Assembly: GCA_965285935.1 (NCBI GenBank)
Contig: OZ260663.1
Location: 75,268,001 to 75,332,000, forward strand
Direction: 5' to 3'
From: Ophelia neglecta
Taxonomy: Eukaryota
DNA length: 64,000 nucleotides
The notes under the pieces are model-generated. The model saw only the letters and a program-made list of their open reading frames with translations, searched no databases and had not been told where the DNA came from. The position numbers and the translations under genes were made by a program. Shown here piece by piece: positions 41,247 to 63,678 of this stretch; positions within the stretch are counted from its first letter, which is position 1, and each line of letters starts with the position of its first letter.

Positions 41247-41509
41247 TCAAACGTTCATTATATGCGCGTTGACGTAAATACTTTCGAAGACTGCAGAGCA
41301 CCCTGTACATTTCCAAGACCCTTCTGTCAGTTGTTCCTCATTTATCTGCTCTGGAGGAAGACATGTTTTGTGCCAGCTTTTCTTACAATCTGAGCACATG
41401 ATACATGTAGTGTCCGGCATCACCAGTCTGGCTGTGCATTCAACACAGTTGATTACTTCTACTTTATCCTGAACTTCTTGAAGGCTCACACTTGAAACTT
41501 CCCGAGCGC
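41247..41509 (-). other. PHD finger (C4HC3) terminal exon of the pseudokinase gene
   Basis: The peptide is CVEC-x12[14 protein letters not shown]15-WKCTGC, preceded by a phase-1 acceptor (tctatttttcag). Confidence 0.8.
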
Positions 41510-44500
41510 CTGAAAAATAGAACACCTGAAATAGTGCTGTTCCTTACATGGCTGTAGATTGAGATGTATTTATAGCAAATTCAACATGATGGTAAGTTGA
41601 AATTATAATGGAGACCCTCACTAAGATTTAGGTAATCGCTAGCGTGAGAGCCACCATAGACTTTTGTCATTTCACGATTATCTGGGACTTGTGTCCACAG
41701 TAACTGCGTTCCAATGTTACTTTTATGGTACATGATTATCATGCATATAAGTACTTGTGTCCGAAGCTGTGTCTTTCTCTGGCTCCATAAATTTGACGTT
41801 TTTTCTTCTGGCTGGTACGGGCAATTCATCGTCACTAAATGCTAGGTTGTCCGCTCCGTTCTCCCCAGTTCCTGTTGAACGTTCTGTTCAGAGCGTAATA
41901 CAATATGACAAGTTATGGCCCGTTTTAGAAAAGGATGTTCATATGTTTGTTACTGTACATCTAACGGATAAGAACTTACGCTTGAATGTTCGTGTACTGA
42001 TTCAATGTCGTTTGTGCTCGGAAACTGTGTCCTTCACTTCAACTGTAGGGAGTATTTAATTCCTAACGAATTCGGACCGATTTAATTGACATTTCCTGAT
42101 TAATGATTTTGTATTATCTGACGGGTAGTGACTCAAATTTTTAAGATAAACACCAATATATATTCTACTACTGTGTTTTGCCGGTTTTCAAAACTCAATG
42201 GGTGCAAACTCTTCTCTTAACTAACAATCTTAATAGTGCAGAGGAAATGTTACCGTTTGAGGTGATGTCTAGCTGATGACAACTGATTTATATTAAACCA
42301 ATTTAATAACCACAGCACATTTGGATAAAACAACCAGTGATTAACATTAGTTCAGGGCGGATTACAGTTCATTTATGCGGACAACTCCGCATGGGGAACT
42401 GTGTAAGCACTAATGGAAAAACAAAATGTGATAACGTCATACTACTGCTATACATAATTAGCAAACATACCTTTTGGTGCCTCTTCTGTTTCACGAAATA
42501 CGACGTGTTTTTGACTGTTTTCCTCATTAATATACTCCATTGTATTTCTTATCTTTGAAAACTCAGGCCTTTCCTTTGGGTTTTCTTGCCAACATTGTTG
42601 CATGATAAGATAAAGTTGATTCGGGCAGCCGTCGGGTTTTGAATGCCGGTAGCCTTTCCTCACACTGTCAAGAACCTGCTTGTTGCTAAGCTTTTCTGAA
42701 ATTAAAGTAAAATTCACTCCTATTGAGGATCGCGTAAAATTGAATTGCCTACTTAAGCAAATACCCCAAGTGAAGGGACTCTTAAAGCAACATGTACCAT
42801 ACAAGAAGGCACTCAAACGGTTGGAATTAGTGAGGTTTGGAAATTATATTTGTATGTGTTGTAGTCGACTAGGTAATTGCATTTAAGGAAGTAATCACAA
42901 ACCGCTATGTAGTCTTAGAACAGACCTGGGTAAGGGATTTCTCCCTTTGTAAATATTTCCACCATTGTGATACCGTAAGACCAGACATCTGACTTGTGTC
43001 CGAATTGTCTTTTTAATATCGCTTCCGGGGCAGCCCAGCGAATGGGAAGCTGGACAGATTCATCTAGAATAAAGTATGCACAAATTGGTTACATGTGCAT
43101 GTCCCTCGTAAGCAGTGTATATTCCCGTAATATGCAAGATTACTGAGCAGGATATAGTCGGAAATTACTAATATGCAATTGGTAGTTAACTCACTGACAC
43201 TGTCAGAAAGAATTAATAAATTCTATAGTGAAAAGTATGGTTGTACTAGAAGGTCCTCTTATGATGTTAATTGGTTAATACGACAGGCTGCTTACAATAC
43301 AATTGAATTGCATTTTACGATGTTTTTATTTCGAGTTTTTATTTTACTTCAATTTAGATTTTGTATCAATTAGAATATGGTATATTATTCTCACCAGCTG
43401 TCGCATAGATAGATTCTTCCATCAGACGAGAGACGCCATAGAGACTGATTTTGACTCTGCGATTGGAGTCAACCATAACATTCCTGGCCGCTACATCTTT
43501 GTGAACAAATGAATGTTCCTCCAGATAGCTCATACCACAGACTATCTGCAGTTGAAAATATAAGATTAGTAACTTAATAAACGTATATGGTGGCCCAATG
43601 ACATAAATAATATTATTTTACAACATGGAATCAAATTAACGTCTGGTAATAAACTGGGGGTCAACAAGAAATTTTCGTTGTTGATAGGTTAACTCGATTT
43701 TTGTTCGTTTAGTGCTAAGTTACAGCACATATAATAAATTGCTAACCGTTTTAGTTTTATTAATAACTAATATTGGCTACCTGTGTGGCAATATCTATCA
43801 AAACCAAGAGGTCCAAGTCGGTTCCTGCGCCATCCCGAAGATAATGAAGCAGATCTCCATTTTCCATCCACTCAGTTATAATACTAATGAAGGATGCTCA
43901 AATAAATATTGACAAAACAAGCACCAAAAGAATTTCGTAGACAACTTTATTTGAGATGTTTAAAATGCTGGTTTCCATGGTAAAATAAAATGTGTTTATT
44001 AATTACCTGTAAGGTTCGCTTTCTACTACTATGCCATAAATGCGGAGTACATTGTTATGTTTCAAGGTCTTCATTTGTTTGCACGTATTTTCAAGTGTTC
44101 CTTTTTCCAACAACCCGTCTTTCAACACTCTCGCACATACAAGTAATGTGTCGTTGAAGTTCCCTACCGTATCGGATATATGAATAAGCTCTATTAATAA
44201 TTCAACCCGATTAACATGTGTGTGTGCGTGATGATCGAAAAGTCAGGCCTCACTGGTAAATAAAAGCCGTGAGGCCAGCGAGTCTTATGTTATTAATGAA
44301 TATGCATTACTGATACAGTAACGTTGGTCGCCCCCCTCAGTTTAAAGTTTAAGCATAATGACTTCAGCAACACAAATCTTACCCCGCCATACTTTTACTA
44401 GTTTCCCCTCGTGCACATTGTCTTTATATGTCAGGTAGTTTTCATCAATGGTGACTTTATTTTGAAAATTCTCACTCAAATCCCACAACATCGGGGGTTG

Positions 44501-47500
44501 TTTCTTGATGGGGTTCTCGATCAATTTCCCTGTGATTTTCAGACACTTCCTTTACATACGAGTATATGACAACAAATTTCTTATTTCCGCGAGGAGGCGA
44601 TATATGCTCTCAGTACTAGTACTATTATGCTGATAATAAGGTAGACAAAATGCCCACACAATTTTTAAGAAATTGGGTTTTAGCACTACAAAACATATCC
44701 TTCGGTAACAAAGTTTCTTACACAAGTTTCCCATGACCAATCAATTGTGTTTGTTGATAATGATAGTAACGCAACAGACCCACCTTGGTAGTGTTTTATC
44801 ATAGCTTCTAAGTTCTGAAAGACCTGGTCGCTTTTAATATGGTATCCCTTGGAGGAATGGATTGGGTACTCGGTGACGTATGGTCCTTTTGAAATGTCGT
44901 AGGACCGCAAAGACAAAACCAAGGAATCTGCAACACCTGAGTAACTTAGAATATCTTTTTTATACCTTTCTATACTGGTACAACTACGCAGAAACAGTCT
45001 GGCAATTGACATATAAAACAAAACCTAACCATTAAAGTCACTTCTTTTTGAAACTAGATAGTCGCCAGTTCGTATATTGGCGGATACTATTCTGCTGAGT
45101 GCCTCACGTCTCGTCAAGTTGCCATGATACCACCTACAACAGCCAGAATTAAGTTACAATTTAAATCTATAAGGCACAAGGGGCATTGACTTTAAATATG
45201 AGACTTATAGATTCGTTGTATTGTATCAGAGTCGTACTCGTAGTGTATGTTATCTTCTTTTGCAGCAATACAGTTGCTAGGTATGAAGCCTAAGCTGTTT
45301 GTTTTGATGTTCCTTACGTGCGACCAGTCGCCTATTCTGGAAGTAGTCCGACAACATTGTGATGCAAAATTTTAAGTCATTCCAATATTGTATCGTTTAT
45401 AATTAAACCATTTTTGGTTTCGATTTTATGCAATGAATGGGCAATCAAGGTAACAGAAACAGTATAAACACCCTACTCTTTTATAGATTCAACAATATCT
45501 CCTTTCGAAAAAGATGCATCGGTCGACCCTCCTTTGAAGTCACAAATTACCATTTTCGTCCCCTTTCCTATCAATTTCACAAAAATAATTCCTTCATAGA
45601 ATGCATGAAATTTTTTATATCACTAAGTTTTATTATATATATATAGCCAAAATCAATATGGCCGTTATGTACGAACAAATTTTTAAGTAAAATTAACGTA
45701 AACTTACCGCCTTTCAATAAATTTGATATGACTGAGGGTCGTGCTGCAAGTGGCGTTGGAATGTCTTCATATTCGTTTCCTAAGGCTTCTTCCGTTTTCG
45801 TCATAAAGGAACTGTCTCGGACGGCCAACTCTGAAGCTACAAAATTCATTGGTACATATCCCACTTCACCATCTGTTTGCCGCTTGCATTTCTTCCAGTT
45901 GCCTTCATTCCTGGTAGAGACATGTAATGTAATGAGGAAAGATGTAAGGTTATATTTATATGAACCAGGTCGGTCATTATAATAACTTATCAATATGCTC
46001 AACAGGAAATGTATAGGTATAAATACACGTTTAAGAGGACTGAGTAAAATGTGAATTTTGAAGGGGGTTGAAAACATTATAACAATACAATTCAATACAT
46101 TTTAATTTTGCCAAGAAACTAATGCAGAATATAGCTGATTTATTATATGCAAATACATAAGTATTCTTATCAAAAAAGGATTGACACCATATGGTATATA
46201 TACCCCATTCTTATTTTCTCTGCGGAATTACATTCCGTGGGGAAAAGAAACAAAGAAGATAAAATAAAATGAAAATTACATTTGAAAGTATAAGACCAAT
46301 TTCAATTGTCACAAACAGTATTTCATGTTATAACCTCCTGATATGACACTGCTTTTTGGGAAAGTCTAAACCTTGGAACATGCACTAGATGATGTGTTCG
46401 CCTAGTTATACAGGAGTGAACATCACAGTTCATAAGGAACATGCCATTAAACAATGCAGGCAGCTAGTTATTTCTATGTTAATATATTACTATAGCAACC
46501 TGGTGTTTATAGATATTGAACAGATCCAGCATTTTCAAGTTTTGAAATATCAGCTCTGTACTTGCTCAATATGGATGACATGATATAATTCTAAAAGCTC
46601 CCTTTTGCAATTTAAACAATAAGTCAAGTCTCTTTTGGTTAGACCCAAGACCTAAATTAATACAGGTTATAAGCTAAGGATAAACAATACAAATACAGAG
46701 CTGTTAAAGCATTTTTGTTGAGTATCCCTTTTGGCATCCATATGATCCCGAAACCTTAAGAAATCTTAAAAAATATCATATTTACATGGTCAGACCAAGA
46801 CAACCTTGAGTCAATGAGGACACACAGGAACTTAGTGGAAGACTAAACACCATGAATTGAGTTTTTTTTTATTGATAAAGGTAATTTATCGGCTTCTCAC
46901 CATGTGGCAATGTTCTTAAAATCCTTATTTATTATTTCTAACACTTTTCTCTCCACATTTATCAGTGACAAATACATAAGTGTCATCAGCAAATAACACA
47001 GAGAAAATTTCTATGGGCCTTGTGATAACTTGTAAAGCTAGAAAGGTTTTTGCAACGGATATCCTCATCTCACTCTACTAAACATGTTAATGACATATTG
47101 TATTAAGGTTTGGGGATGTACTTATTTTTATTTTTTTTCATAGTGGTAATTTTATTTCAGCTTCATCAGTTTCATATATTATCAATGTTGGGGATGTACT
47201 TATGACTCGAAAATAGATTCTATTATAAAAATACAGAAAAGAACAGTACGCGTAATCACTGGGTCGTCGGGAAAAACTCCAACAATTCCAATCTCCGTTG
47301 AAAATAAATACCCATGCCTAGTTTACATATCAGGATTCTGCAATGGCCTCTTGCCACAGGTTATATTATCTATGTTTACATTTTAATTTGGATCTGCTCT
47401 ACTATCACACCTGGCAGGCCGGGAACTCTCATGTGAAGAAACACCAGACTAATATATTTGGAAAAGAAGCCTCATTTGAAACTATATATGTCTGCTCTCG

Positions 47501-50500
47501 TCAAGCGTTCAGAAGGTCTGCAAGGAATTTGTTCATTTCCAAATTAACTGTTCAAATTGACAGGCTATAAATCAAACCTTTATTACACCCCTATGCAATG
47601 CACCTAAAAATATAATACGTTTGGTATTTTCTTTTTATATATATATTGCCACCCTATATGTATTGCTTGTGTCTTCCTTATTTATAATAGACATATAAAC
47701 CATAGGCTTCCTGTTAAGCCAATAGTATTAATCATATAACTGTAAAGTCTCGATTGCCTGTAATTGTATATATATGGCAATACCATTCAATAGATTTAAT
47801 TCAATAGATTCAAGATCATACTTGCAACACTGGAGAGATCATTTAGATATAGAGCAAAAAGAAGTGGTTTTAATATTGATCACTGAGGAACCACATAAAG
47901 TAAATTTCTTAATAGATTTTGTTATAAGAGACAAATTAAGAAAGTCTTTAGAGATAACTCTCAATCAAAGCATAAACAGTGCCACGTTTTCCATATTTAT
48001 ACAATTTTAAAGAAGTATAGAATAATCTCATCACTATTATAACTTAAATCAGGATCTATCTCATCAAAATCAGAGTTAAATTTTGAACTGCTATCATTAA
48101 GTTCAAAAGGATTCAGAAATCTTTCTCTTAGTGCAGACCAACTCAATTTTTCTGGTTATTTTAAATAGTAGAAAGAGTATTCGTGAACTCATCACTCTCT
48201 ATAAATCGATAAGTTCACCAGGAAGTGCATTCTTCTTACATTTAACACAACTCCAATTATTTTGAATAGATCCTGTATATACAGGATTTTTTGCTGAAAC
48301 ACCTGACAGTCACTTTATATGGCACACTCCATAACAAACACCACAGCCAATATAATGAGGCACCGACATTGTATTATGATATCAATATAGATATGCAATC
48401 TAACTTGGACATTTGGAATCAATCAACTAATCTAATTTTTTGAAATAGGCAAGCACATATGAACCAGATTCTGGGTTCAAATTTACTACGTGAGATATTT
48501 CCACCGTTTCCCTGGGATCCCAACCGGACAAAAGGTCGATTCCATATTATTTGAGGCCATTAATTCTCTATATAATTGACCTACTTTATCTTTAGTTGCC
48601 AGTTAAATGTCCTTCAAGGGGGCACTAATATAAGATTTGTCAGCGAAAGCATATGGCTGTGCAATGCTCAGTGTTTCACGATTTGTTTTTTCATTGTAAC
48701 CCTATCCCAATATTTAATGGGAGAGTGTTTGCCAACTCTACACAATTGGGGAAGGCATTGGGGAACGTTTGTTTCAATGTAACAATTGCATGATAGACTA
48801 TCAATAACGATCAACTGTACTTTGTTCCCTAGATGTTTGCTTTTTTTCCTGTCTATTGCGCTTTTCTTTCAGGGATACTGCGAGCGCAGAGTAACTGATT
48901 TGTCTTAACTGACTCGTGTTTATCAAAGACAGTTAGGAGAACTACGAGAGTGTATACTAGGCAGACAATTGAAGCAAAATCGTTAATCAACAATAGCCAG
49001 TTACATCGGTCCGACCTCATCGGGAACAACATACTGAACCACATACTGGCCCACGTACCTTAATCCCAAGCTCCCAAACTGTGAGTGAACTTGTAATGCT
49101 AATAAAAAATGAAAACAGATAAATAGGATTGGAAACCTTTAACCTACTGCATTAGGTACTTACTCTGAGAGTTCTTTGAATTTGTCCCCTTTTTGGAATG
49201 TTAGAAGACCTTCGGAAGGCTCATCAAAGTCATAAAGTGCCACAAATATTTTGGATTGTCTGTCACCTAAAAGTTGATCTTATATGCAATGTCCATTTAA
49301 ATATGTGTGGTAACACTGACAGGCTTAACATGGCTTGTCTATATTTAAATCAAATTTCAATATTAATCTTTCTGTTTTACCAATATAAGTAGTGTAGGCT
49401 ATCGCGTTTTTCAAGCGAGAGAAATAACACGTTAGATCATTAATGAAATAACCTGGCTTATTAGAAATTGATTCGGGAGCTCCAAGTCCGTCTAACGGCA
49501 TACTCGGCTTATTTGGTAGTGGTCGTCTCTCGGAAGTTCCAACCTGGCCTGAATCCGACGTGTCACTTTTAAGCAAACAAACACAATTATAGGTTATTTC
49601 TTTTTTTCTCTAAATGGTTCAATCTTGGAAAAACATCTAGTTTGTAAATAAGGGTATAGTTCTTATTGTTTATTTACAATTTAGCAACGGGGCAAGTTTT
49701 CTCTATTTAATGAGATTTTATAGCCTACAAATCATCATTTTAACTGTACATCTCGAACCGAAATATATTTATAACTAAGCCATACATCGTTGTAAGTGTG
49801 TTTGTATATGAAATATCAGGTGCGGCTGGAAAAAAAAAATCGAATGGTGCAAAATTTAAAATTAAGAAGCAATTGTGAGAATATTTTAATGTCCTTGGAT
49901 TATAAAGAAATTAATATCAATAAACAATGGTAAATTTAACCCTTCATATTCAGATTCCTGTTCCCTGGCCATCTCACTGACGTCCGAGTCTCCGGAACGA
50001 GGAGGCGGAGCGGCTGGCTTACGTGCAAGACTGCTCGGATCGGCTGATTGCATTGGTTTAACCTCCGTTGGTTTCGTCTCCACGATCTCCACTTTCTCCA
50101 AACAGGCCCAATAAACAAGTAAACCTTTAGGATCTTCCACCTCATCATTGGAACTGAGGTTGATACACTTGCATTTAGGGCTGTTATTAACATTCCTATT
50201 GAAGAAGAATACGAATCTTACATACCTTACTTTTAGAAAATCACGCACTTTTCACGTGTCAATCACTAATAAGACGTCACAAGAAGAGAAAGATTCACAC
50301 CGTATCTCGTTAGGCTTATTTGAGAAACCTTTAAGGGAACACAAATGCTCTACAAAGCGAATATTTAGTTGCTGATTTAGTATAAATGTTGAGCATGCGT
50401 GCGTAGTGAATCAGTTGCTCTTCAATCTTAATCGATAATTGTTCCAAGCAGGCCCTCTTGAATATCACACGGGTACAAAAATAGGTAAATCAAATGACTT

Positions 50501-52627
50501 TTGCAAGGGGGCGAGAGGGCGAGGCGGGAGATGTAGGATCGTGTACTAAAGCTTCAAGTCGACCGGTTTGAGGTTCTACCTCTTGAGACTAGTCTCTGTT
50601 GGGTTCGAGTTGGGTGCCGGCTACCGAAGCCTCAATATCAGCTGCTGTTTGAGGCTTTTTGTCAGGGCTAATTAAAGGCACTGTATTATCATGTATATGC
50701 ATTTTTGCCATGCCCCTTTATCCGCTGAGGCAGGTATTTTTCGTTACTACGGAGCATGCAGTTTTACATGCACAATGTCATACCGATTAAGGCAATATGA
50801 GTAAACCGAGAGTCGGGTAATACTCTAATGCTGGGGTGTACGTAGTGTATTGTTATTCTCTTCGTACACACGTATGTACGATTGGTCAACTTCTCGCCTC
50901 GCTGCCTGCCTCTTCGCATGCTCAAGCATCGGAAGAAATGTTTAAACAGGTTTGGGTGCTTTGCACCCTTTTTTGCACCTTTTTTTTATAGACAAGTACA
51001 AAATGTTAAACTAGTCACTGTAACTAATTTCTTCGGGTATAATCCAAGCTGTAATCTCCGGGTCAATTATAATTATCAAATATGAAAATACCTTATTCCG
51101 ATTAAAAGAGCCACCTAAAAGAGGCACACTGCAGTTTAATTACCCTTCATTATTTTGGCCCTTTACCTTTTTCGAAGAAAAATGGCTAGAGGCGGCATGT
51201 ATTGGGCCTCGAACCACGACGCCGGCTACGCCGCGTCTGCCGGCCTACTTCGTTTTGCCCGGAACTAAGCAACGCCTTGAACCAAAGCCCCCAATTTGTC
51301 TTTTTTAATGTATTTGGAACTTGCAGTTTTTGTGTGGATACTTTTTATAAGCTAACTACTTCTATTACTACTCTTAGTGTACACTTCTGCTTGTTCTTTC
51401 TTCCTTCATTTCTATTCATTGCAGGTGGTTTGAAAGAAAATCCTGTTCTTAACCTTTTACCTCTATCTAAGCTTTTACCTTAGAGTATTCGGACTTTAAG
51501 GACTGTCCGAACACCCATTTTTACCACCCCCTTTCATTGATGGGGAACGGGGGGGGGGGGGAGGGGGGGGGGGGTCTCGAGTTTTTAAAGCATTGTGTAA
51601 CAGGAAGGACGGTGATTTACACATACTCGGGAATTAGTTTGCTTTTGATAGTGCCGAAGTTTTTGGTATATCACACAGTCTCGATAATAATCTTTTTTTC
51701 TGATTTTCGGCCAATTGAGATGGAAAAGGCCTTTTTGACACGGAAAATTGAGCCATAGGTGTGGCTTGTAGCGTACTAATTTAAATCGATTTTAAAAACA
51801 AGTTAAGCGATACAATTTGCATCCCTATTTGATACTAACCCTGATACGACCTCAATTATATCTCCCTCGTTGTAGCTTAGGTAGCCTTTTTTCTTTGACT
51901 GATAGGTTCGCTTGGCAGAATATATTGGTTTGCCTGGAATACGATTTCTTGTTGTTATCTTTATTATCAACATTACAGATAGCTAAGTTTCATAGCTCTA
52001 GGTCCATTTCTAATGTCATAATGGTTGGCTATATATTACTTGGGACCATAGACCAATGGAGCGAGCCATGTAGTCGCTGCGGTGAAAGCCGAACTTTTTC
52101 CATATTTGCACCTGCAGACAGCATTTCATAGTCTGTTGAAAACATTTATTTACATACAGATGTGAATTTATTACACTGAATCGACCATGATGAATCGATT
52201 GTTCATTTGTTCAAGTGTGACTTCTCTATAGAGCCGGCAGAATAGCGCCTTTTCGGTAGGTGGAAAAAGTTCGGCTTTCACCGGAGCGACTAGATGGCTC
52301 GCTCCATAGCTCTATGTATGGTCCCAAGTAATATATAGCCAACCATTATGACATTAGAAATGGACCTAGGGCTATGAAACTTAGCTACATTACAGACTGT
52401 GCTAAGTTAATTATAACATGTTGATTGGTTACAAAAGAAAAATGACAAGATAATTAGGCCAAACTTAGTAGACGAAGATGAAGGATTGAACATCCATAAA
52501 AGGTACAGAAATACATGCCTTTTGCCACCATGTCATTCACCTCATTTGGTGTCAAAATGGTCGCAGCGTATTCCAACTCCTGTCCGGGTTCAGATTGGGC
52601 TTCCGGTTTACTGTCACAACACCCCAT
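41247..52627 (-). CDS. Src-like non-receptor tyrosine pseudokinase, ~865 aa: MGCC anchor, Pro/Tyr-rich linker, SH3, SH3, SH2 (Arg-less), pseudokinase, acidic linker, PHD finger
   Basis: Exons on the minus strand are 52627-52515, 50195-49941, 49565-49453, 49266-49164, 45910-45708, 45567-45477, 45336-45238, 45133-45030, 44927 (or 44936)-44784, 44529-44383, 44163-44007, 43883-43781, 43545-43395, 43063-42926, 42695-42471, 41883-41755, 41681-41622 and 41509-41247, all phase-compatible. Motifs seen: ALYDF...[60 protein letters not shown]. The first junction and the linker exons before the PHD are less certain. Confidence 0.85.
41980..42042 (-). other. Candidate 63-nt cassette exon with in-frame TGA ([13 protein letters not shown])
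   Basis: It has a ccctacag acceptor and a gtaagt donor, is symmetric phase 1-1, and lies between the kinase and PHD exons. Confidence 0.55.
46500..48460 (-). mobile_element. Decayed, internally deleted CR1/L2-clade LINE in the intron that splits SH3 #1
   Basis: Minus-strand remnants include a PHD-like [11 protein letters not shown]...WSCVKC (~48230-48370), FLNPFELN...DEIDPD (~48050-48120) and the RT motif VLFADDT (~46980-46998), with many stops. Boundaries are approximate. Confidence 0.7.
51980..52387. mobile_element. MITE with ~120-bp TIRs and 9-bp TSD (Mutator-like)
   Basis: TAGCTAAGTTTCATAGC...GAACTTTTTCCA is mirrored by TGGAAAAAGTTC...GCTATGAAACTTAGCTA, and CATTACAGA flanks both sides. 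Confidence 0.88.
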
Positions 52628-52679
52628 GTCGTTTACATTCCGTTTTGTAAAGCAAAAAGGCTCCAAATCTAATCACCTA

Positions 52680-55600
52680 TGTACAAAATAAAACACATAT
52701 AAACTGTAATTATCTTCACGAGATAAACAAGTACACGCTAACATCAATGTTACGATGCAAGGGAAATCACGGGAACAAACTATACCAATACACAATAAAT
52801 AAAACCTCTATTGACTTTTTCCCCAAAAGAAACAGTATGCCCTTCCAGTAAAAACGTTCAAGTTTTCCTACATTTCCAAACTAAAATATGGATTAATTAA
52901 GGGGAAGGAAATAAGCTTAACTTGACCATTCACCAATATTGACAACATATGCAAATTTTGGAACGATTAACACTGGAGGGACATTTATCAATATACATTG
53001 TGACGTTGTTTTTCTGGGTAAAAGAACTACAGATAGTTTCCAACTGGTCATATTAAAATATCCAGGGCGGAATTCTGGTTTATTGTAAGGTTGCTTTAGG
53101 ATGTTGAAGCTATTTCAATTTGTACATATGGCAACTATCACTCGTAGATTTCACGATTTTTTTGACCGTGTTAGAGAAAAAATAATCATAACTCGGGCCC
53201 CTTTCTTTAAGGACATAACACATCTGTTATTGTTGTTGAAGTAGATACATGGTTGTATCAATTTGTAGTTCTTTCAATTTAATTTAATATCAAATAGAAC
53301 GCCTACTTCACTGTTTAGACAGAGCAATGGGTGTTTGAAAACCCCCGTGTTAAATATATTTTTAAAAATGCCAAGGAGCATCTGGCACCACAGTAAACAA
53401 AGAGATACAAAGGCATATTTTAGGCATCATCAAAGAATCTGCCAAGCCTGACTCGATTTTCCCGTTGGTTTGATAATATAATCTTTTTTAATGTATCTTT
53501 AAACAGGTTCTTTTATGTTTGTGCTAGAAGTACATTCTGATGCTTTTACTGACAATGTTGACATTTATTTTACTGATTAATAAAAGCTGTATCTTCATAA
53601 CCCTCACTTAACATCTATGTTATAAGCTAATAGCATCTCATAGTTTCTGGTAGTTGAACTGATTATCCTCGTCACATCAAACCTCCTATAGTTATGTAGG
53701 TATACATTATTATTGTACATTATACAGCGCAATAGAACACTGTAAATGTGGATAAATTCTGAAAAGTAATAATAAATGACATTTATAATAACGAATGTCA
53801 ATTGTACTACAATTAAGCATGCAAGCAATTGTTTCGTGTGGCCATTTTGGAGACTATTAGACAAATTGAGACTTACCTGTGAATCGTAACATATCCTTTC
53901 ATCGATGTCGACTTTAACATTTCGATAAAACAAATCCAATCAGGAAGTTCAAAATATGTGGACTTAAAATGGAAGATAAAGATCAGACTTGAATTTGAAG
54001 AGGATAAGCAAGTTGAGAGGGCTCGTACTCGAGACTACACACCAACACACTCATTTAAATGTGTACATGGTACTACTAGATGCATGCTGGTATATTATAA
54101 ATAAATATCATTTGAAACAATACGCATCTTGGCTACTTGTTTTCTTCCTAGATATATTTTACCTGTTTCTTTACTCTCAGGCAATAGGTGTGTGAATTGG
54201 AAGTTATAGCTTAATCTTTCTAGCTTTATCTACCGCTCGCTGAAATGATTGGCTTTGTAAATTATCTGCAAGAAAATAATAGGAGCGTTAGCAGTCAAAC
54301 ATTGATTACCCTGTCCCAAATAGTCAAAAAATCGCCATGGATGTTTTATATAATTGCTAGTACAAAACGTGCAATAACTATCTTTCAGATACGCAATAGG
54401 GGCCTACAGTAAGACACGAATCATCGCATTACTTGAAGTCATCTGGGGTTAGACTTTGCTCTTTTCTGTACGTGTCTAAAACAGCGTCAACGACACAAAA
54501 ATAACAACTGCTTGACGTTAACCCTGTGTCGTAGGCCACTCACCATGTATCAGGAGTGGTTTAGTCTGTACTGATTTAAAGTAATGAAAATATTTACTAA
54601 GTTATTACTCACTGTAAATTTGTGAATATTGGCATTTGGAATTAAAGTAGCAATATCAGTCCAAGATTCTTGCCCAGGCCGATTCTTAGGATTATAGTAG
54701 ACATGTTACAGGCACGTTCGTTTAGTAATGATATTGACTTTAAATGTGTAGGTATAGCCCTGAATCTTAAGGAATTTTCGCAAATCGTTGTTCTTCAGAT
54801 TGATGGGAAGGTATTGGTGGTCCTAGCAAAGAAAGCCTATCATATTTGAAATGATTGGTCATTTTTAATAATACTTTTGCCTTATTTTTTGCCATAATTG
54901 CCCAACTAGACTAGCCCACTTTCTTCGTACTAACGTTAATTAATACGCAATTAAAGAATGCCCACATGACTTAGATATCAGCGTCATATGTCCTTTACAC
55001 CTCTTCAGCCAGACAAAGATATTTATTAACATTGATCTTATTCAATGTTCACTAACTCCTTAAGACCTAATTCTGATATGTTTTGAGAGGACCATGCACA
55101 TTGCCTTCTTCAAATAAACGTGTTATATTTAGATACGAAGAAAAAACATGCATATCTGTCTAGATACATGTAGTTAACAAGGAAACTTTGAACGCATACC
55201 AAGAAGGATTCAACAGTGGACAGGATAATATATAGCTATGCAAAAAGAGCAGTCATTGTCCCGAAGAGGTTGAAGGTTCCTAAATTATCAGGAGGGGTAG
55301 GGGTGGGGACGTGTAGATTTAGAGGGGATCCACAGGCTCAGAAAAAATTAATTAATTAACCGAGTACTGAAAGAATGTACAGCCATATGCATAAACCTGA
55401 TATATCAATTTTCCATTCGGTCATTTTCAGTGGTTTCAACAGTACCCGTTATGCATCAAAACAAATTTACAGATATTAAAGGAAATTAACCATAGGCACG
55501 TACTACAGTAAAAACAACAACATTTCCTAATTAGTCCATCAACCCTTGATGTGGACCTGACTTGCCAGCTTTGTATATTTCACTAATGGATGCAAAACCT

Positions 55601-56860
55601 GAAATTAGAAAGCGGTTAAATTATATCTTAGAAATTCAGAATTGATCTCCAGGGACAGTTAAATACCTCAAAAGTAAAAAATTGCCAAAATCTGGGCAAT
55701 GAGAAGAAGTATCGAAAATACGCCTTTATACTTGATAGTGGAAATAATACAAACGCTTTCTTTTCATATGAATGTCGAGTTTCTTGTTGGACAGTATTTT
55801 GTTCCGGTTGGGGGTGGGGGGTGGGGGTGGGGGGAGGATGTTTCGACAAGTTAATTGGAACTACTGTGCTCCTTTCGTCACAGGCTTTGTACGTTATCTT
55901 TATATATGATTGTATAACCAATTTTGATGATTTATTTCAATTCATTAATAGATAATTCAATATGTGATTTTCATTTAACCGCCGTTTAAGAACTTAAATA
56001 TACCACTGAAAGGCTGGAGAGAAGTATTTATGTATGTGTTTTTCTTTAAATAAAAACAGCCTTTTAAATCACATCTATATGACAAAAGAAAAGATTTCAG
56101 TTTTTTTAACTTTAACTACTCAATCCTTCTAAGCAACATTCCCATTACTCCTACAAATGGGTTGGAAACTTCGAGATGTATTGTCATTGCCGGAGCATAT
56201 GCATGTATGTCCCATTAAAGCAGAATACAAGTGGCCTTGGTGTCCAAACTGCAGTTTGATACTACATAAGAGTCACCTGGACAATGGTTCTGTAATGATA
56301 GATGGGCCAAACGTGATGGTCACTGGCGCAAGTTGTCTAGGCTCCAATAAGCTACGATGTTAGTGACTGGTACCTGGGCTAGTAGTACAGTTTTAGAATT
56401 GTTGACAAGGAACGAGCCTAAAGGAGCGATATAAATTTATTTTTCATTAGAAGTAGTATCAATATGCCAATTGTTCATGATTTCACAAATCCGCTCTACG
56501 TCGAGTGGTTGGTGACGAATGAAAATTAAACTACCTGTCTATGATACTACTGGAACGTCTGAATCACAATGTCGATGCAATATGTGTAATGTACTTCACA
56601 TATCAATCCAGAGAATGTGGACTTTTGGCTTATGTCTGCATGTGTGTACCAATACAAAACTTGATGTGTGATGTTTTTGTGTACATAATCAAAGTGGATA
56701 ATCTATTCACATTAAAAATAGCGCCCACGAATTGCGACAAAGTACGAGCAGGTCTTAAATTGAGGTCAAAGTTAACCATTTCAGCTAGTTTGGAATGGGG
56801 AAGTAGATGGTTCATTTTAACGGCAAAGAATCATGAGCAGAATAATTTGAACAATCTTTA
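52680..56860. promoter_or_regulatory. Divergent intergenic/promoter region between the two kinase paralogs, including a probable non-coding first exon of the pseudokinase (minus-strand donor near 53872-53877)
   Basis: The two ATGs at 52627 (-) and 56922 (+) face away from each other. A minus-strand acceptor lies at 52677, a minus-strand CAG|gtaagt at ~53877, and an ETS-like CAGGAAGT at ~53941. Confidence 0.5.
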
Positions 56861-56921
56861 AAAAGGTTCTACAAGAAGGTGTGCTTTGACTTTGATCGTA
56901 ATAATTGGCTGATTCGATGAA

Positions 56922-59900
56922 ATGGGTATTCTTTGTTGCAAACGTCCAGCCGTGGAGGCAACTGAACACTCTGATATACACGATATACGTCTGGATATAC
57001 CCGCTCATCCAGAACAACAACCACCGGAAGGTATAATCCAAGGTTACAATATTTCCTTACATATGGCCGTACTTTTAAAAGAATTAAGGGCAAGTCGGAT
57101 ATGTTTCATACTGCTGACCAACAACCACTTTTCTTAACCTCCAAAGCAGATTGCAATTAAAAGGCAGTGGTAAGGCTGGGATAAATGGGGCTACTTTCAG
57201 CTGTTCATATGGGAATTTAACATGGGAATGATGTTTTAAAAGCCCTTACTCAGTGCTTGTTGAAGTAATCAAAACAAAACTTTCAGGGATGATTAACATT
57301 TTAGAGCGCTTTCCATTCAGGTAAATTTCACATTTGTGTGATAGCTACAGGAACCGGAACCGCTGCAAATCTGTAGTCTAGCCCCACATTCAAGTGCAGA
57401 CTATTGGTATGCAGTGCTGTCACCACCTTGCTAGCAGGCTGAACTAGAATTATTACATAATCCCCGACTGACCCTATTGCCTACAACACAGTGTTTGTCC
57501 TAGAAATAACAAATGAGTAGTTTAGGCCCTGCTTCCGCTTCCTGTCGAAATTTTTCGTTCCCCTATTACGTACTATTCAAATGTATTACTGTTCGTGTGT
57601 CAACAAGGGTACAGCTGTCGACAATTTAAGATATATTTTCTTACTAGATAATAGGACCTACAGCTGCAGGCCCTCAAACAACAATCCCTAGCTACACAAT
57701 ACTACTGTTACTAAGTTTGTTGCGAAATATAAATCGGATTGATAAACAAAATCTGATAGCCTTTACTCGTGATCTCTTAGGTCAAACCAGTAGTACAATT
57801 TGAATCAAATTCAGTAAACAATTTGAATTTCTGTAGATGGAATGTTTCAAAACATCCAATTCCATTCCAGCCGTTTTTTGATTTGAATATAGAATACCGA
57901 ATTGTTTTCACTTGGCATGCAGTGCGTCTACGTTTGTAATCCATGGGATAATATTTTTTTCCATAGGACAATGAATCTGCCCGTGGAGATTTACACAATA
58001 GCACTGGCGGTATAATTGACATATTCACAGAGGGATTTAACTATTGAACCATTAATATTAGCTTACTTTAATGAGAAAAAGAAATATTTTTTTCACTTCA
58101 CCTGGTACAATGTGGAATGCATTCTCAAATAAACAGTCGTTTTCCTATTTAGCGAGGTTGGTCATTTGAAACAACATGAATGATAATATAAATATCGATG
58201 GGTGCATAAAAATTGTAAGCTTAGCCTACTAATTTCACTAATCACTTTTTAGGATTGTACACAATTATTAGGCTTAGCCTAACTATTTGACGAATTTTCA
58301 TTTGTCACAATTTATCACATTTAATTTGGCAGATTATAGTGCTTACAAAATACAAAGTTTCTTCTGACGTTTTTTATGTGTTGGGATTCATGTTATATGT
58401 TTGTTGTCATACGTTACATAACATTTTCTTCTCCCTATATAACAGTGTCTACAGCTTCACCTAATAGCAGTGGAAGCATCATTCCAGAACATCAACGGTA
58501 AGGGTTCATGCCTGCCTTTGATATAGATAAAGATAAATAAATTATTGCACCAAATGAATATCAAAATTAAACACATATTCGAGCTGAACTGTTAGGCCAA
58601 TAATTATCAATGAATAAAAACATGTTTTTTTTTTCATGGACCACAGATCAAGTACTTCATCAGATTCTCTTAGCCAACAAGAACAGCATGAGATAGAAAA
58701 TAGCGAAGGTGGGTAAATAGCAAAAGTTAGTTCATGTGGTAAGATCTGACGCTCTCTCTTTGACTTGTACGCTTCCTCGTTACTTGAAATATTACGGTAG
58801 TTCATCGACCGCGCCCGCGCAGCCGTTAGTCGAAAATTGCCGAGTCTTAATATTTTGTAATAAACAAGCAAACTAAGGGAGACCTGAAAAAAGTCCTATT
58901 ATATCGTCCACTTTACCGTTGAGTCTTGTGAATTCACAACGAGCCATGGCAGGAAGGCTGAACATTATAAGGGTAAGCTTCAACATATCGGCCTTCTTTA
59001 AGTGTGCTATAGGCCTATATATATCAAATGCAAATTTAAACCACTGAATGTTTAATTATCATGACCTACAGTGTGGAGTTGGCATCTGGTGCTAACGATG
59101 GCGCCGGCGTATGCCGGCTGCTTAGAGAGTCCATGGTTTACCGTAAATATGTTTCTCGAAATAATTACATTACTTTACATGTATCAAAGATCATTTCCGA
59201 GTACTAGTGATTTAAGCTTTTGGCATAGAAAATCCAATTCATAATCATTAAATATTTCTTAAACATCCTCCCACAGGGGGTCACTGGTAGGTGGGTGTTT
59301 ATTTTCCAGGGCCTGAAGTGATTTACACAGCTATGTTTGACCTAGAGCGTTTGAGAGAAGACTGTCTCAGTATGAAAGTAGGGGATCGCTTCAAGTACAT
59401 TTCTACGTAGGTGAAGGCTTCCTTGTTTGTTCTGTAGTTTCGCGGTAAACTCCTCTCGTGTTTATATTGCAAGTTATATAATATTAAATTGATTAAATAA
59501 GTTTTACTTAAGTTGTGAATTTGGTTGTTGTTCTTTGACCGAGGTTGTCGTATGGTGGCCTGAAGTAGATGGTCTCTTGGGACCAAACGGACATTGTTGA
59601 CCATAATAATTTTTCTGCCGGTTATCTATATATTCCCGTATTACTGATTTCTCATCAGTCTACTTAATGAACTTTTCGATTATAGAAGCATCACAGCTTT
59701 CGTAAATTATCAATTCGTATTTTAGTTCTTATCATTACATATTTTAGAAAGGACACATGGTTGCGTCTACAAAACTACAAGACGAAGGAAATCGGATACA
59801 TTCCAAGTAATTTTGTCCAACTAGAATCGAGTATTGAGTCGTGCAGGTAGGTTAAGTGGCGATTCCTTTTGGAAAAAAGATAACAATTATTCTGTTGCAT

Positions 59901-62900
59901 CACAAATGCACCCCCTGCGATATGGTCTTTACCGCTTGACTCTGTACATAATGTATGCCTTTAGTCTTGTATTCAAAACGAAAGGGATCATTCAATTACA
60001 TTAGAATATTTTCATTTTTTCAGCTGGTTTTATGGGATGATAACACTGAAAGAGGCGGAAACATTGCTCGACGAAAATGAATATTCAAATGCGTTCTTGG
60101 TGACAGAAAGAAAAAAAGACCCAGGCAAGTGTCCTGTAAAGTCGGAAGTATTGCTTTCATTTTCCATGCGTAGAGTCACATGAGTTGTCTCGGTTTCGCT
60201 GGCGAGCTAAATCCCTTTTTGTTAACTAACCAGTTAATCCTTATGCCAGATTTTACAGTACGTTTAGATTGGTGTTAATATCACAATTTATTGTAAATCA
60301 TTATTTTTGTTACAGAAATGTGTATATACTACAATACTGAAAAGATCTTTTTGTTTCTGATAGGTTCGTACACCCTTTCGTATAAAGCCATTGACAGTAG
60401 AATGGCTGTTATACGCCATAAACCTATACATTATGACGGGAAGGAATACTATATTACTGGCGAACCCAAATACATCTCATTAAAAGAAGTTGTAGATCAC
60501 TTTAAGGGTAAGATACAAAAACAAATATCCCACATCCATGAAAGATATTGCCAATGCATTCGAAATAAACTTTCAAATACGATCTTTTGACCTTGTCTGT
60601 GATGTTAGAATAACACTTTTCCTCGGTTGGGTTTTACTGAAATTGTTCGCATTCACTTGGATCCTAAGTTGCCTGTTCTGGTCTTAAATCACAGTAGAAC
60701 AAATATACAACCTTTACAAATAACAGACCCATGGCACCCTATAAACATTCCCCTATGGACCAGACCCATTTTATGAACAGCGCATGACATTTCTTCAAGC
60801 TAAGTACTAATGATTGTAAACATTGTAAGCGTATGTGTTATTATTTACGGCTGTTCTATATTTATGGAGGCAATATGACATATCAAAATATATTCTAGAA
60901 TGATATTTGTTTCAGACAAAAATTCTTTAGGGAACCATACATGTACCCATCCAGAGCCCACAATATACGGCTTGACAACTACAGACGACAAATTACATAT
61001 TTCATTTGATACCCTCACACTGGGGAAGGTAATCGGAGACGGTAATTTTTGCACGGTATACGAAGGTAAGAATGACGGAAGAATGTTAGGTCACGCTTAC
61101 GCTGCTTTAAAACCTACGACATGTTAAAGTTATGCGAGCTTTCGATCACGGACAACAACAGGAATTGATACCCGGCAAGCAGATAAAGCAAAAAAACTTA
61201 TCAGGAACATTCCATTGAATAAGCCCGAGATTAATCATCAGGAACCACAAGCACGCATAAATCTATGATATGTATGAATATGTACCAATTACACATTAAA
61301 TCCGAACAAAAAGCAACTCTTTCTCCTGGGCCTACACCACGACATTGTAATATTTGCATGCAGACGATTATGATTGACAGGTACATGCACATTGATCGGA
61401 GGGCGACAAGTCGCTGTAAAACAGCTGAATGGGGAATGTGTCAACGAAACATTGTTAAACCAAGAAGTAAACGTAATGAAACAGTTACGGCATGAAAATG
61501 TGGTGTGTCTTTTGGCTATCTGCATGGAAAAGGGTTTTTACATCGTCACAGAACTGATGGCAAGAGGCTCTCTTTTCACGTATCTACGTATTCAAAGCCA
61601 TAAAGGTGGCCTCAAAACTGGGGACATATTGATAATTGCTAAAAAGGTAAGAGTTGTGGTAAAAACGTTGGATAATTTCTTGAAATTTTATGTATATACA
61701 TTCCCGGAGGTCCTGTTACACTTTGCCATTTCGGTTGCTTAAACAATAAATATTCGAATTTAGATTGCTGCGGGCATGCAATATTTGGAAAGCAAACACT
61801 TTGTCCATCGCGATCTGGCGGCCAGAAATGTTCTTCTTGGAGAACAAGGAAAAGTGAAAGTCAGTGACTTTGGAATGGCCAAAAAGATAAAAAACGAATT
61901 ATACATTTCACCAGGTAGTGTGTAATTTGTGATCAAACCATGGTTTTACAAAGCAAAACGACTCTTCTGTAATCAGGTGAGGCAGTGCGTCTTTATGTTA
62001 AAAAAAACCTGTTCCTTTCAGATGAAAAGGAGCCTAAGCCTATTCGATGGTGTGCACCAGAAACATTGCTTCCGACAGATCCGATATTTACCCATAGTAG
62101 TGATATTTGGTCTTTTGCCATCGTTTTGGTTGAAATGTTTCAAGATGGAGAACAACCTTATCCCGGTGACTTTTTAAAAATGTCAATTTCACATAGTTGT
62201 AACTTAAACATCTTATAATTGTATGCCTCTTATGAAGTTAGGGATTAATAAAAATTAAATGAGTTAAATGATGTGTAGCGTAAAAAGGAAATACCTCTTG
62301 ATGTTCTCCTTTCTTTGGAGATACCGACACCGTCTCGGAAATGGTTTATGCATCGATTTCACTTTATGAATAGGAGATGGTTATTGCATCCTGACTCCTC
62401 ATTAAAAAAAACACTAAAATTACACACCTGTAGGAGTATTAGGTTAGACGACACACTGAGAGTAGCAAATTGTAAACCACGACACGAGGTGCTGTTATGA
62501 TCACCAGCATCTGACCACCTGCATCCTTGAATTTTAGCATGTTCATTTATTCTTGGCCAGCTTGATCTACTTTCATACCAAGATCACGATACTATCTCGG
62601 AATTTTAAACGCTCATACCTCAGTGATATATAGAGACATATTTCAATGAAGTTTGTTATTGTGTGGCCTGTCCACACCGGTGCCGCTTGTGCACTTTTTG
62701 CTGAGAAGGGGTGATATTATTTATATTCGCCTGCAATAGTGCAAATTTGAAACCTAGGTCTAGCGGCTATTTTGATACTTTGAAAGCTTCTCTAACCTAG
62801 TAAACCTAGCTAACCGTGTCTCAAATAACGTTTTTATACTACCAAATGCATCCTCATTACAAATTTTATATTAAGTTTTAACCTATCCAATTTCATGTTT

Positions 62901-63678
62901 AGGTTTAAGTACGCGTGGAGTGGTGGATTTTGTCCAATCAGGAAAACGTCACGAAAAGCCTGAAAAATGTCCGCCAGGGGTATATCGTTTGATGAAGCTT
63001 TGCTGGAAAGAGCAGCCAGAAGAACGGCCAAATTTTTCTGACGTATATGACAAAATATTCAAACTCATCGAAGAAGGTATAAAACTGCAATCGCAAAACG
63101 GATTTAGTCGTAGCAAACTGGTAACAATAATCACTAATATACCACATTAATGGAGCCCTGTTTAATTATACATCCTTTCCCAATCTTTCTATCGTTCACT
63201 AGGTACACACGACCAAGTGCACTTTAATGTGGCTTTTGACTCCAGCGACGAAGACACTGATAGCATTCCCTCCGAAAATCACTCATCGGATGGAGGTATC
63301 CTCTAACAAATGCTTCCAGCGCTAATTACACTTTACAGTAAGGGATACGTCCTACCGGTGTGCCAGCTCTCTAATTCTTTACAGTTTTATGTGTTATGAT
63401 ATGAGGTAACTTGTTTTGTTATTTAAGGAGACAAATCTGGGACAGAATGGCGGGACCGAGCCCATGACTCGGAAGATTCCAATAATCTTCGTCACGTCTG
63501 CCCTGTATGTAAACAACGTAGAAATCACAATGAACCACTGGATGGGACCTCGTGGAGAAAATGTGTTTCTTGTGACTTTTGGTTCCACGCACTATGTGTA
63601 ACAGGTAAACCAAAAGATAATGGCAACAGAGATGATGATTTATTTATGTGTAATCGCTGTCGACGATTAACATTTTAA
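56922..63678 (+). CDS. Src/Frk-like non-receptor tyrosine kinase, ~630 aa: MGILCC anchor, SH3, SH2 (Arg-less), active kinase, acidic linker, PHD finger
   Basis: Exons are 56922-57030, 58446-58497, 58647-58708, 59310-59406, 59748-59846, 60024-60124 (GC donor), 60364-60507, 60916-61065, 61381-61646, 61764-61914, 62022-62165, 62903-63076, 63203-63295 and 63428-63678, totalling 1893 nt in one open frame. Motifs seen: [59 protein letters not shown] is at 63851. Small extra linker exons are possible. Confidence 0.88.
63428..63678 (+). other. PHD finger terminal exon of the active kinase (absent from the ORF track)
   Basis: Read in phase 1 it gives ...[61 protein letters not shown]. Confidence 0.85.

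Follow-up and report, generated by a model that had tools for sequence, protein, structure and literature searches.

Two divergent Src-module genes with terminal PHD fingers, a predicted kinase and a putative pseudokinase, in Ophelia neglecta

Organization of the locus

The window analysed here is a stretch of 64,000 nucleotides from Ophelia neglecta (C5:75,268,001-75,332,000), AT-rich animal DNA with short exons. It contains two divergently transcribed genes that share an unusual predicted domain order: an N-terminal Gly2 followed by Cys-Cys, SH3, SH2, a tyrosine kinase domain, an acidic linker, and a PHD finger. The rightwards-transcribed gene (+ strand; 56922-63678) has 12 exons encoding 586 amino acids and retains the motifs expected of an active kinase, and the leftwards-transcribed gene (- strand; start 52627, end 41247) has several catalytic residues replaced. 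The two start codons, at 56922 and 52627, are arranged head-to-head, 4,295 bases apart, as an earlier note on this DNA had estimated (~4.3 kb). The intervening spacer (52628-56921; 4,294 bases) is single copy in the genome, has a G+C content of 0.35 and a CpG observed/expected ratio of 0.69, and contains no CpG island.

The gene models were built from stop-to-stop open frames on both strands with codon-level inspection, and splice dinucleotides, phases and open reading were checked by script. Pfam searches were run exon by exon, and the joined (spliced) models were used for local alignment and for trees. From the splice phases we infer that all exons of each gene are translated into one polypeptide.

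The two genes are clearly homologous (33% identity over 443 amino acids, E 7e-69), a relationship also evident from their exon sizes and phases, from an SH2 domain lacking its characteristic arginine in both, and from a phase-1 PHD exon at the end of each. Over the kinase domains the two are 38% identical, a value no higher than that between either of them and other Src-like genes. The first coding exon (109 nucleotides, nt), an SH3 exon (99 nt) and the catalytic-loop exon (151 nt) are of equal size in both genes, and intron phase is identical at every intron that they have in common. The earlier note, which had described the intron positions and phases as common and had singled out the 99-nt and 151-nt exons, was right on these points; the N-lobe of the leftwards gene, however, contains one intron more than that of the rightwards gene.

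The rightwards-transcribed gene

Exon 1 (56922-57030; 109 nt) begins with MGILCC, in which Gly2 and Cys5/Cys6 form a predicted acylation site, and ends in phase 1 at the donor G/GTATAA (a slash marks the exon end); the N-terminal MGILCCK has the Gly2/Cys pattern of acylated Src kinases. The SH3 domain is encoded by exon 2 (59310-59406; 97 nt; first half) and exon 3 (59748-59846; 99 nt; second half, with GYIPSNFV). It has a sub-threshold Pfam match (SH3_3, E 0.046), and the assignment rests on an alignment of SH3 repeats. The SH2 domain occupies exon 4 (60024-60124; 101 nt; first half) and exon 5 (60364-60507; 144 nt; second half), with Pfam E-values of 9e-4 and 1e-4. Exon 4 reads FLVTER, and in alignment with FLVRES of the SHP2 C-SH2 domain a threonine stands at the position of the FLVR arginine. 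All splice donors of the gene are GT except that of this SH2 intron, which most likely is a GC donor at 60125 with the consensus context CAG/GCAAGT; it gives a normal SH2 domain, into which the next GT donor (60170) would insert 15 residues.

Exon 6 (60916-61065; 150 nt) encodes the linker between SH2 and kinase together with the glycine loop GDGNFCTV, and exon 7 (61381-61646; 266 nt) the N-lobe with VAVK and the alphaC Glu. The catalytic loop and the activation-loop tyrosine are in exon 8 (61764-61914; 151 nt; Pfam E 4.5e-20), and the C-lobe, with PIRWCAPE, in exons 9 and 10 (62022-62165 and 62903-63076). The tyrosine kinase matches range from E 6e-14 to 4.5e-20. In an alignment anchored on a hidden Markov model VAVK, the alphaC Glu, HRDLAARN, DFG and the activation-loop tyrosine are all intact. 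Exon 11 (63203-63295; 93 nt) has no Pfam match and encodes the acidic linker NVAFDSSDE, and exon 12 (63446-63678) encodes the C4HC3 PHD finger (Pfam PHD, E 4.8e-6) and the stop codon.

The leftwards-transcribed gene

The core of the leftwards gene comprises 13 exons encoding 618 amino acids and is collinear with the rightwards gene. Five more candidate exons lie within what would otherwise be the first intron; all are phase-compatible, and their inclusion lengthens the model to 720 or 874 amino acids. The one-to-one collinearity implied by the earlier note accordingly extends to the 13-exon core, upstream of which probably two to five further exons are present.

Exon 1 (52519-52627; 109 nt) encodes MGCCDSK, with Gly2, Cys3/Cys4 and Ser6, and likewise has the Gly2/Cys pattern of acylated Src kinases. 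Its intron has a probable GC donor at 52518 (AAAG/GCATGT). Candidate exons 2 and 3 (51933-51840 and 50195-49941) encode a degenerate SH3-like repeat A (SH3_2, E 0.02) and a proline-rich linker, and candidate exon 4 (49565-49453) a linker with RRPLPNKP, an RxxPxxP motif; the inclusion of these three exons is uncertain. Exons 5 and 6 (49266-49164 and 45910-45708) encode SH3 repeat B (ALYDF ... GNW ... GYVPMNFV) and a linker, with SH3_1 matches of E 2.5e-4 and 2.5e-3. Repeat C, in exons 7 and 8 (45567-45477 and 45336-45238; exon 8 is 99 nt), is the counterpart of the SH3 domain of the rightwards gene. All SH3 matches in this gene are weak (E 2.5e-4 to 0.02).

Three SH3 first-half exons begin in phase 1, the phase in which exon 1 ends, and their alternative use is possible. 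The linker after repeat B has a consensus GTAAGT donor, and its phase fits the next SH3 exon. The gene very probably carries two to five extra upstream exons with SH3 halves and proline-rich linkers, giving a predicted product of up to 874 amino acids that probably has one or two extra SH3 domains. The possibility that these exons are transposon debris was rejected, as they are single copy in the genome.

The SH2 domain (exons 9 and 10; 45133-45030 and 44936-44784; Pfam E 2e-3 and 0.04) reads YLVSKR, and in alignment with the Syk SH2 domains a serine takes the place of the FLVR arginine. Exons 11-13 (44529-44383, 44163-44007 and 43883-43781) encode the altered N-lobe, exon 14 (43545-43395; 151 nt; Pfam E 7e-17) the catalytic loop, and exons 15 and 16 (43063-42926 and 42695-42471) the C-lobe with PIRWAAPE. 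The tyrosine kinase matches have E-values of 7e-17, 1.6e-17 and 1.3e-13. Exon 17 (41755-41871; 117 nt) encodes the acidic linker NLAFSDDE, and exon 18 (41247-41509) the C4HC3 PHD finger (Pfam PHD, E 3.3e-5) and the stop codon.

The kinase alignment anchored on the hidden Markov model gives a degenerate glycine loop HEGKLVKV, VCAR at the position of VAVK (VAIK Lys to Arg), Thr for the alphaC Glu, HKDVAARN for HRDLAARN, and SLY for DFG, in which the Asp is replaced by Ser; the Asp of HRD is kept. Both genes keep APE, DVWS, CW..P..RP and the activation-loop tyrosine, and in the leftwards gene the fold-defining residues HxD...N, APE, DVWSYG and CW...RP are all present. The catalytic motifs that the earlier note had reported as kept in one gene and altered in the other were all found so, as were the acylation-type N-termini, the arginine-less SH2 domains and the acidic linkers.

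No stop codon or frameshift occurs in the 650 codons of the leftwards gene defined by homology, or in the 874 of the long model, at a stop density of 0.066 per codon in the introns. Usable splice sites flank each of the 17 introns in the model, and G+C content is 0.44 in the exons and 0.35 in the introns. The losses are confined to catalytic residues. Judged from its letters, the gene looks like a maintained pseudokinase gene rather than a pseudogene in decay.

Public DNA contigs (three sets of one sample) were compared with 41247-47246 and differ from the assembly at 16 sites, 5 exonic and 11 outside, a density that is the same in exons and introns and a number too small to weigh constraint. 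Three of the exonic differences are non-synonymous and two synonymous. At 41404 the contigs read A and the assembly C, which changes Cys823 of the predicted protein to Phe; this is the first Cys of CIMC and is outside the assigned C4HC3 ligand set. Over the last intron (41447-41846) contig depth is in the thousands, compared with about 25-40 elsewhere, and many loose contig ends lie at 41608 and 41658, marking a high-copy short repeat in this intron.

The terminal PHD fingers

The terminal PHD exons proposed in the earlier note held up in both genes, with scores of 26.9 bits (rightwards) and 24.3 bits (leftwards) that are above the PF00628 gathering threshold of 24 bits. The ligand pattern C-x2-C-x13/15-C-x2-C-x4-H-x2-C-x17/19-C-x2-C fits a PHD finger, and so does an aromatic residue in front of the His; a C4HC3 pattern search of the window matched at two places only, the two PHD exons. 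With the two related genes described below the family has four fingers, and the eight zinc ligands (C4HC3) are invariant in all four. A weak AlphaFold model of the finger, built from four sequences (predicted local distance difference test, pLDDT, of 59), was compared with known structures using Foldseek; every listed match is a PHD finger (E 0.02-0.2), including those of MLL3, TAF3, Pygo, MLL1, BPTF and UHRF1. What the PHD exons of the two window genes share is limited to the C4HC3 ligand pattern and the phase of the exon.

The alternative that the PHD exons are separate genes was rejected. Neither exon has a usable start codon ahead of the finger. The exon begins in phase 1 in three lineages, which fits the exon before it.

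PHD fingers are usually chromatin readers. The fingers described here resemble those of TAF3, BPTF, MLL, Pygo, UHRF1 and ING2 in the spacing of the C4HC3 ligands and in having Trp or Phe before the His (FWFH, KSWH). They differ in belonging to a kinase of the cytoplasm with a predicted lipid anchor, where the others are parts of nuclear chromatin proteins. The PHD finger of ING2 reportedly binds phosphoinositides, and a phosphoinositide is a possible ligand here too.

A family of four genes

A motif scan of paralogous kinase loci identified two further genes of the same architecture (L022, C5:25,390,001-25,400,000; L023, C5:25,414,001-25,424,000) arranged in tandem on the same chromosome, 50 Mb from the window. 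Both encode SH3, an arginine-less SH2 domain, a kinase domain and a downstream C4HC3 finger exon, and their kinase domains are 85% identical. The second half of the SH3 domain is present, the SH2 domain reads FIISER (Arg to Ser), the catalytic motifs are all intact, and the finger exon begins in phase 1, as the last kinase exon requires. No pseudokinase was found beside them among the kinase matches of the genome, and neither an acylation motif nor the N-[VL]-A-F linker was found within the 10-kb pieces. All four genes have PIRW rather than PIKW and a His in G-x-R-H-x-K-P.

Single-exon and profile searches of the genome gave no further family members, the other PHD matches having no kinase nearby, and a profile of the four fingers found no further copy adjoining a kinase. 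On sequence grounds the window genes are members of a predicted four-member family and not a unique pair.

Outside this genome the only close homologue of the rightwards gene is a 1,159-base Logan contig (L021; sample ERR14113986) with 61% identity across the N-lobe and catalytic exons. It shares the exon boundary and keeps HRDLAARN and DFG, but at this length neither a PHD exon nor a neighbouring gene would be visible. An exhaustive protein search with the rightwards N-lobe exon gave no match above 56% identity and none with a C4HC3 finger, and the finger was present in 0 of 152 fetched database proteins (the 150 best matches and two cluster members). Word-indexed searches with both PHD exons and the leftwards catalytic exon, a method that sees only proteins of similar length, gave no match, and a metagenome scan returned only distant kinases (36-47% identity). 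It is possible that the family occurs in a single invertebrate lineage only.

In a careful maximum-likelihood tree of 26 kinase domains (support given as paired values) the rightwards gene pairs with the foreign contig (100/99), and L022 and L023 then join them (84/92). Placing all five PHD-family sequences in one clade gives a likelihood equal to that of the free tree (approximately unbiased test, p-AU 0.53). The two window genes do not come out as sisters: the free tree groups the rightwards gene with L022 and L023. Forcing the window genes together as sisters is 2.5 log-likelihood units worse but is not rejected (p-AU 0.21). The two share 11 rare kinase residues, a weak count, and the other counted pairs share 1-9. 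The extra N-lobe intron of the leftwards gene is missing from the rightwards gene, L021, L022 and L023, and the leftwards gene may have branched first, since this intron, if ancestral, would fit that order. In our view a single PHD fusion and a single loss of the SH2 arginine probably preceded a split into at least three lineages, and the head-to-head neighbours appear to be old paralogs and not recent duplicates.

Relationship to known kinases

Src-module kinases comprise the Src, Frk, Csk, Abl and Tec families, with Frk/Brk/Srms-type kinases in a SrcM subgroup (Yeung et al. 2021, PMC8662651). The window genes have the SH3-SH2-kinase order of this module, and their products resemble Lck and Fyn in having an N-terminal Met-Gly and Cys close by. 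Among named database proteins the nearest are Src, Fyn, Yes and Src42A-like, but over the kinase domain no Src-like protein is more than 36-45% identical. Of the solved structures, CSK, SRC, PTK6 and ABL match the N-lobe exon best, with nearly equal scores. The exon sizes of the family (99 / 101-104 / 144-153 / 147-150 / ... / 151) match the pattern of vertebrate SRC, whose exons 4-10 are 99/104/150/156/180/77/154 nt.

The window genes differ from the SrcA and SrcB kinases in three respects. Those kinases have HRDLRAAN, which is also found in three genes elsewhere in this genome (L024, L025 and L032), whereas the window genes have HRDLAARN (rightwards) and HKDVAARN (leftwards). The window genes have no C-terminal regulatory tyrosine, and an acidic linker and PHD finger follow the kinase domain. 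The FLVR arginine is lost in both, as it is in L022 and L023. By these three features they fall outside the Src family proper. In the literature searched no description of a Src-module-PHD architecture was found, nor of a Src-type kinase/pseudokinase gene pair or a Src-module pseudokinase paired with an active paralog. The architecture looks new; among known groups the Src module comes closest.

A competent kinase accompanied by a homologous kinase fold without catalytic residues is familiar from JAK JH2/JH1, HER3/HER2, STRAD/LKB1 and PEAK, and the PEAK scaffolds also resemble the leftwards product in combining a pseudokinase with extra interaction modules. The window genes differ from these cases in being separate, adjacent and divergent genes.

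Interpretation of the gene pair

We favour, with moderate confidence, an explanation in which the window genes are two old paralogs of a small four-gene Src-module/PHD family, the rightwards gene encoding an active kinase and the leftwards gene a non-catalytic adaptor or scaffold. The PHD exon would have been fused on once, before the family diversified, and an inverted duplication would then have set two copies head to head. A PHD-type zinc finger appears to have replaced the Src-type C-terminal tail in all four genes, with an acidic linker before the finger in the window genes.

Src-module kinases are a textbook example of modular autoinhibition, in which the classical latch is a phosphotyrosine tail held by the SH2 arginine. 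The rightwards protein is most likely an active, N-terminally acylated and membrane-associated tyrosine kinase, as its motifs suggest. It presumably cannot use the Src/Csk latch, because it is without both the FLVR arginine and the tail tyrosine, and its acidic linker and PHD finger may provide targeting or autoregulation instead. A family that lacks both halves of the SH2-tail latch and has a PHD finger in their stead would show another way to regulate or target a Src-type kinase.

The leftwards protein no longer has a glycine loop, the Lys that anchors ATP, the Glu of alphaC or the Asp of DFG; its predicted fold, its frame and its splice sites are intact, and an internal duplication of the SH3 exon pair would have added one or two SH3 domains and proline-rich linkers. 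Its motifs suggest that it most likely serves as an adaptor or scaffold that is anchored at the membrane and has no catalytic role, combining two or three SH3 domains and proline-rich motifs with an SH2 domain, a dead kinase fold and a PHD finger. That it acts on its neighbour is a possibility. An adjacent, apparently maintained pseudokinase with multiplied SH3 domains lets one ask how a signalling enzyme becomes a scaffold.

Several points weigh against this explanation. The finger of L022 is below the Pfam PHD threshold (15.9 bits, E 0.014), the structural model of the finger is of low confidence, and there is no obvious ligand for a PHD finger on a lipid-anchored kinase. Neither the PHD exons nor the linker exons of the two window genes are significantly alike in pairwise comparison (BLASTP E 0.15 and 2.4, respectively). 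The leftwards gene is on a long, unresolved branch of the tree (length 1.61). The exon joins are predicted throughout, including those of the PHD exons, both GC donors and exons 2-6 of the leftwards gene, and acylation, activity, loss of activity and the scaffold role are all read from motifs.

The earlier note proposed that the two genes form a co-regulated membrane module in which the dead paralog restrains, scaffolds or acts as a decoy for the active one, possibly in immunity. As a dedicated pair they would share a bidirectional control region, and the dead paralog might bind the active one at the membrane. The head-to-head order has been kept despite divergence to 33% identity; the same predicted acyl anchor in both products means that they could meet at one membrane; and the RxxPxxP motif and several SH3 domains of the leftwards protein could engage the SH3 domain or the linker of its partner. 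The two kinase domains also share the most rare residues among the counted pairs, and their sisterhood is not rejected. However, bidirectional gene pairs have divergent starts with a short common promoter region, usually under about 1 kb, and correlated expression; the CpG-poor spacer, at 4.3 kb, is longer than is usual for them. Moreover, the active-looking L022 and L023 have no pseudokinase neighbour among the kinase matches, the free tree places the rightwards gene with them and not with the leftwards gene, and the suggested link to immunity found no backing, as no immune domain or context was seen. We consider the dedicated module unlikely.

A bolder combination of these elements is still more doubtful. 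It holds that a new Src-module branch swapped the phosphotyrosine-tail/SH2 latch for an acidic, serine-rich linker and PHD finger, and that an ancient inverted duplication gave rise to a pseudokinase that has a lipid anchor and three SH3 domains, is expressed together with its neighbour, and controls it allosterically or scaffolds it.

There is only a slim chance that the leftwards protein is not dead, and has an atypical activity or binds nucleotide, in which case the locus would encode two kinases of different specificity. WNK, CASK and HER3 have activity or nucleotide binding despite missing canonical residues, and the leftwards protein keeps the Asp and Asn of the catalytic loop (HKDVAARN) and the activation-loop tyrosine (ESIYAT); its VAIK Lys to Arg replacement is conservative. 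However, it lacks the glycine loop and the alphaC Glu as well as the DFG Asp that binds magnesium, and in known cases nucleotide binding is lost with this combination.

The leftwards gene might also be a relic without function, a duplicate that is not expressed or is decaying and whose catalytic motifs have eroded. This would suit its five lost catalytic features, its long branch, the non-synonymous contig differences (one of them Cys to Phe in the finger region) and the equal density of differences in exons and introns, which covers only 16 sites. Against it stand the altered Cys outside the ligand set, an uninterrupted frame, usable splice sites throughout, retained fold-defining residues and exon G+C raised as coding sequence would be, and we consider it very unlikely.

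Other Src-like genes in the genome

At C5:3.28-3.60 Mb at least four Src-like genes that are closely related to one another (L026-L029) form a cluster, with HRN in place of HRD and AGF or DFA in place of DFG; predicted pseudokinases of Src type appear to have expanded locally here. Because their catalytic motifs are altered, predicted Src-type pseudokinases are not unique to the window. These genes resemble the window genes in being Src-like, and the leftwards gene in their altered motifs, but they differ in that no C4HC3 finger was seen in the 10-kb pieces around them and no family-type finger by profile search, and in forming their own clade (100/100).

Two other Src-like loci contain repeated exons. 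In L030 (C5:4,287,001-4,297,000, - strand) the start of the catalytic-loop exon (THTTFLQ..GM.FMEYNR.VHRDLA) is repeated three times, ~110 bases apart. In L025 (C5:58,073,001-58,083,000), one of the Src-family genes with HRDLRAAN, the last kinase exon is present in two copies ~1.8 kb apart, which could be mutually exclusive exons or a duplication remnant.

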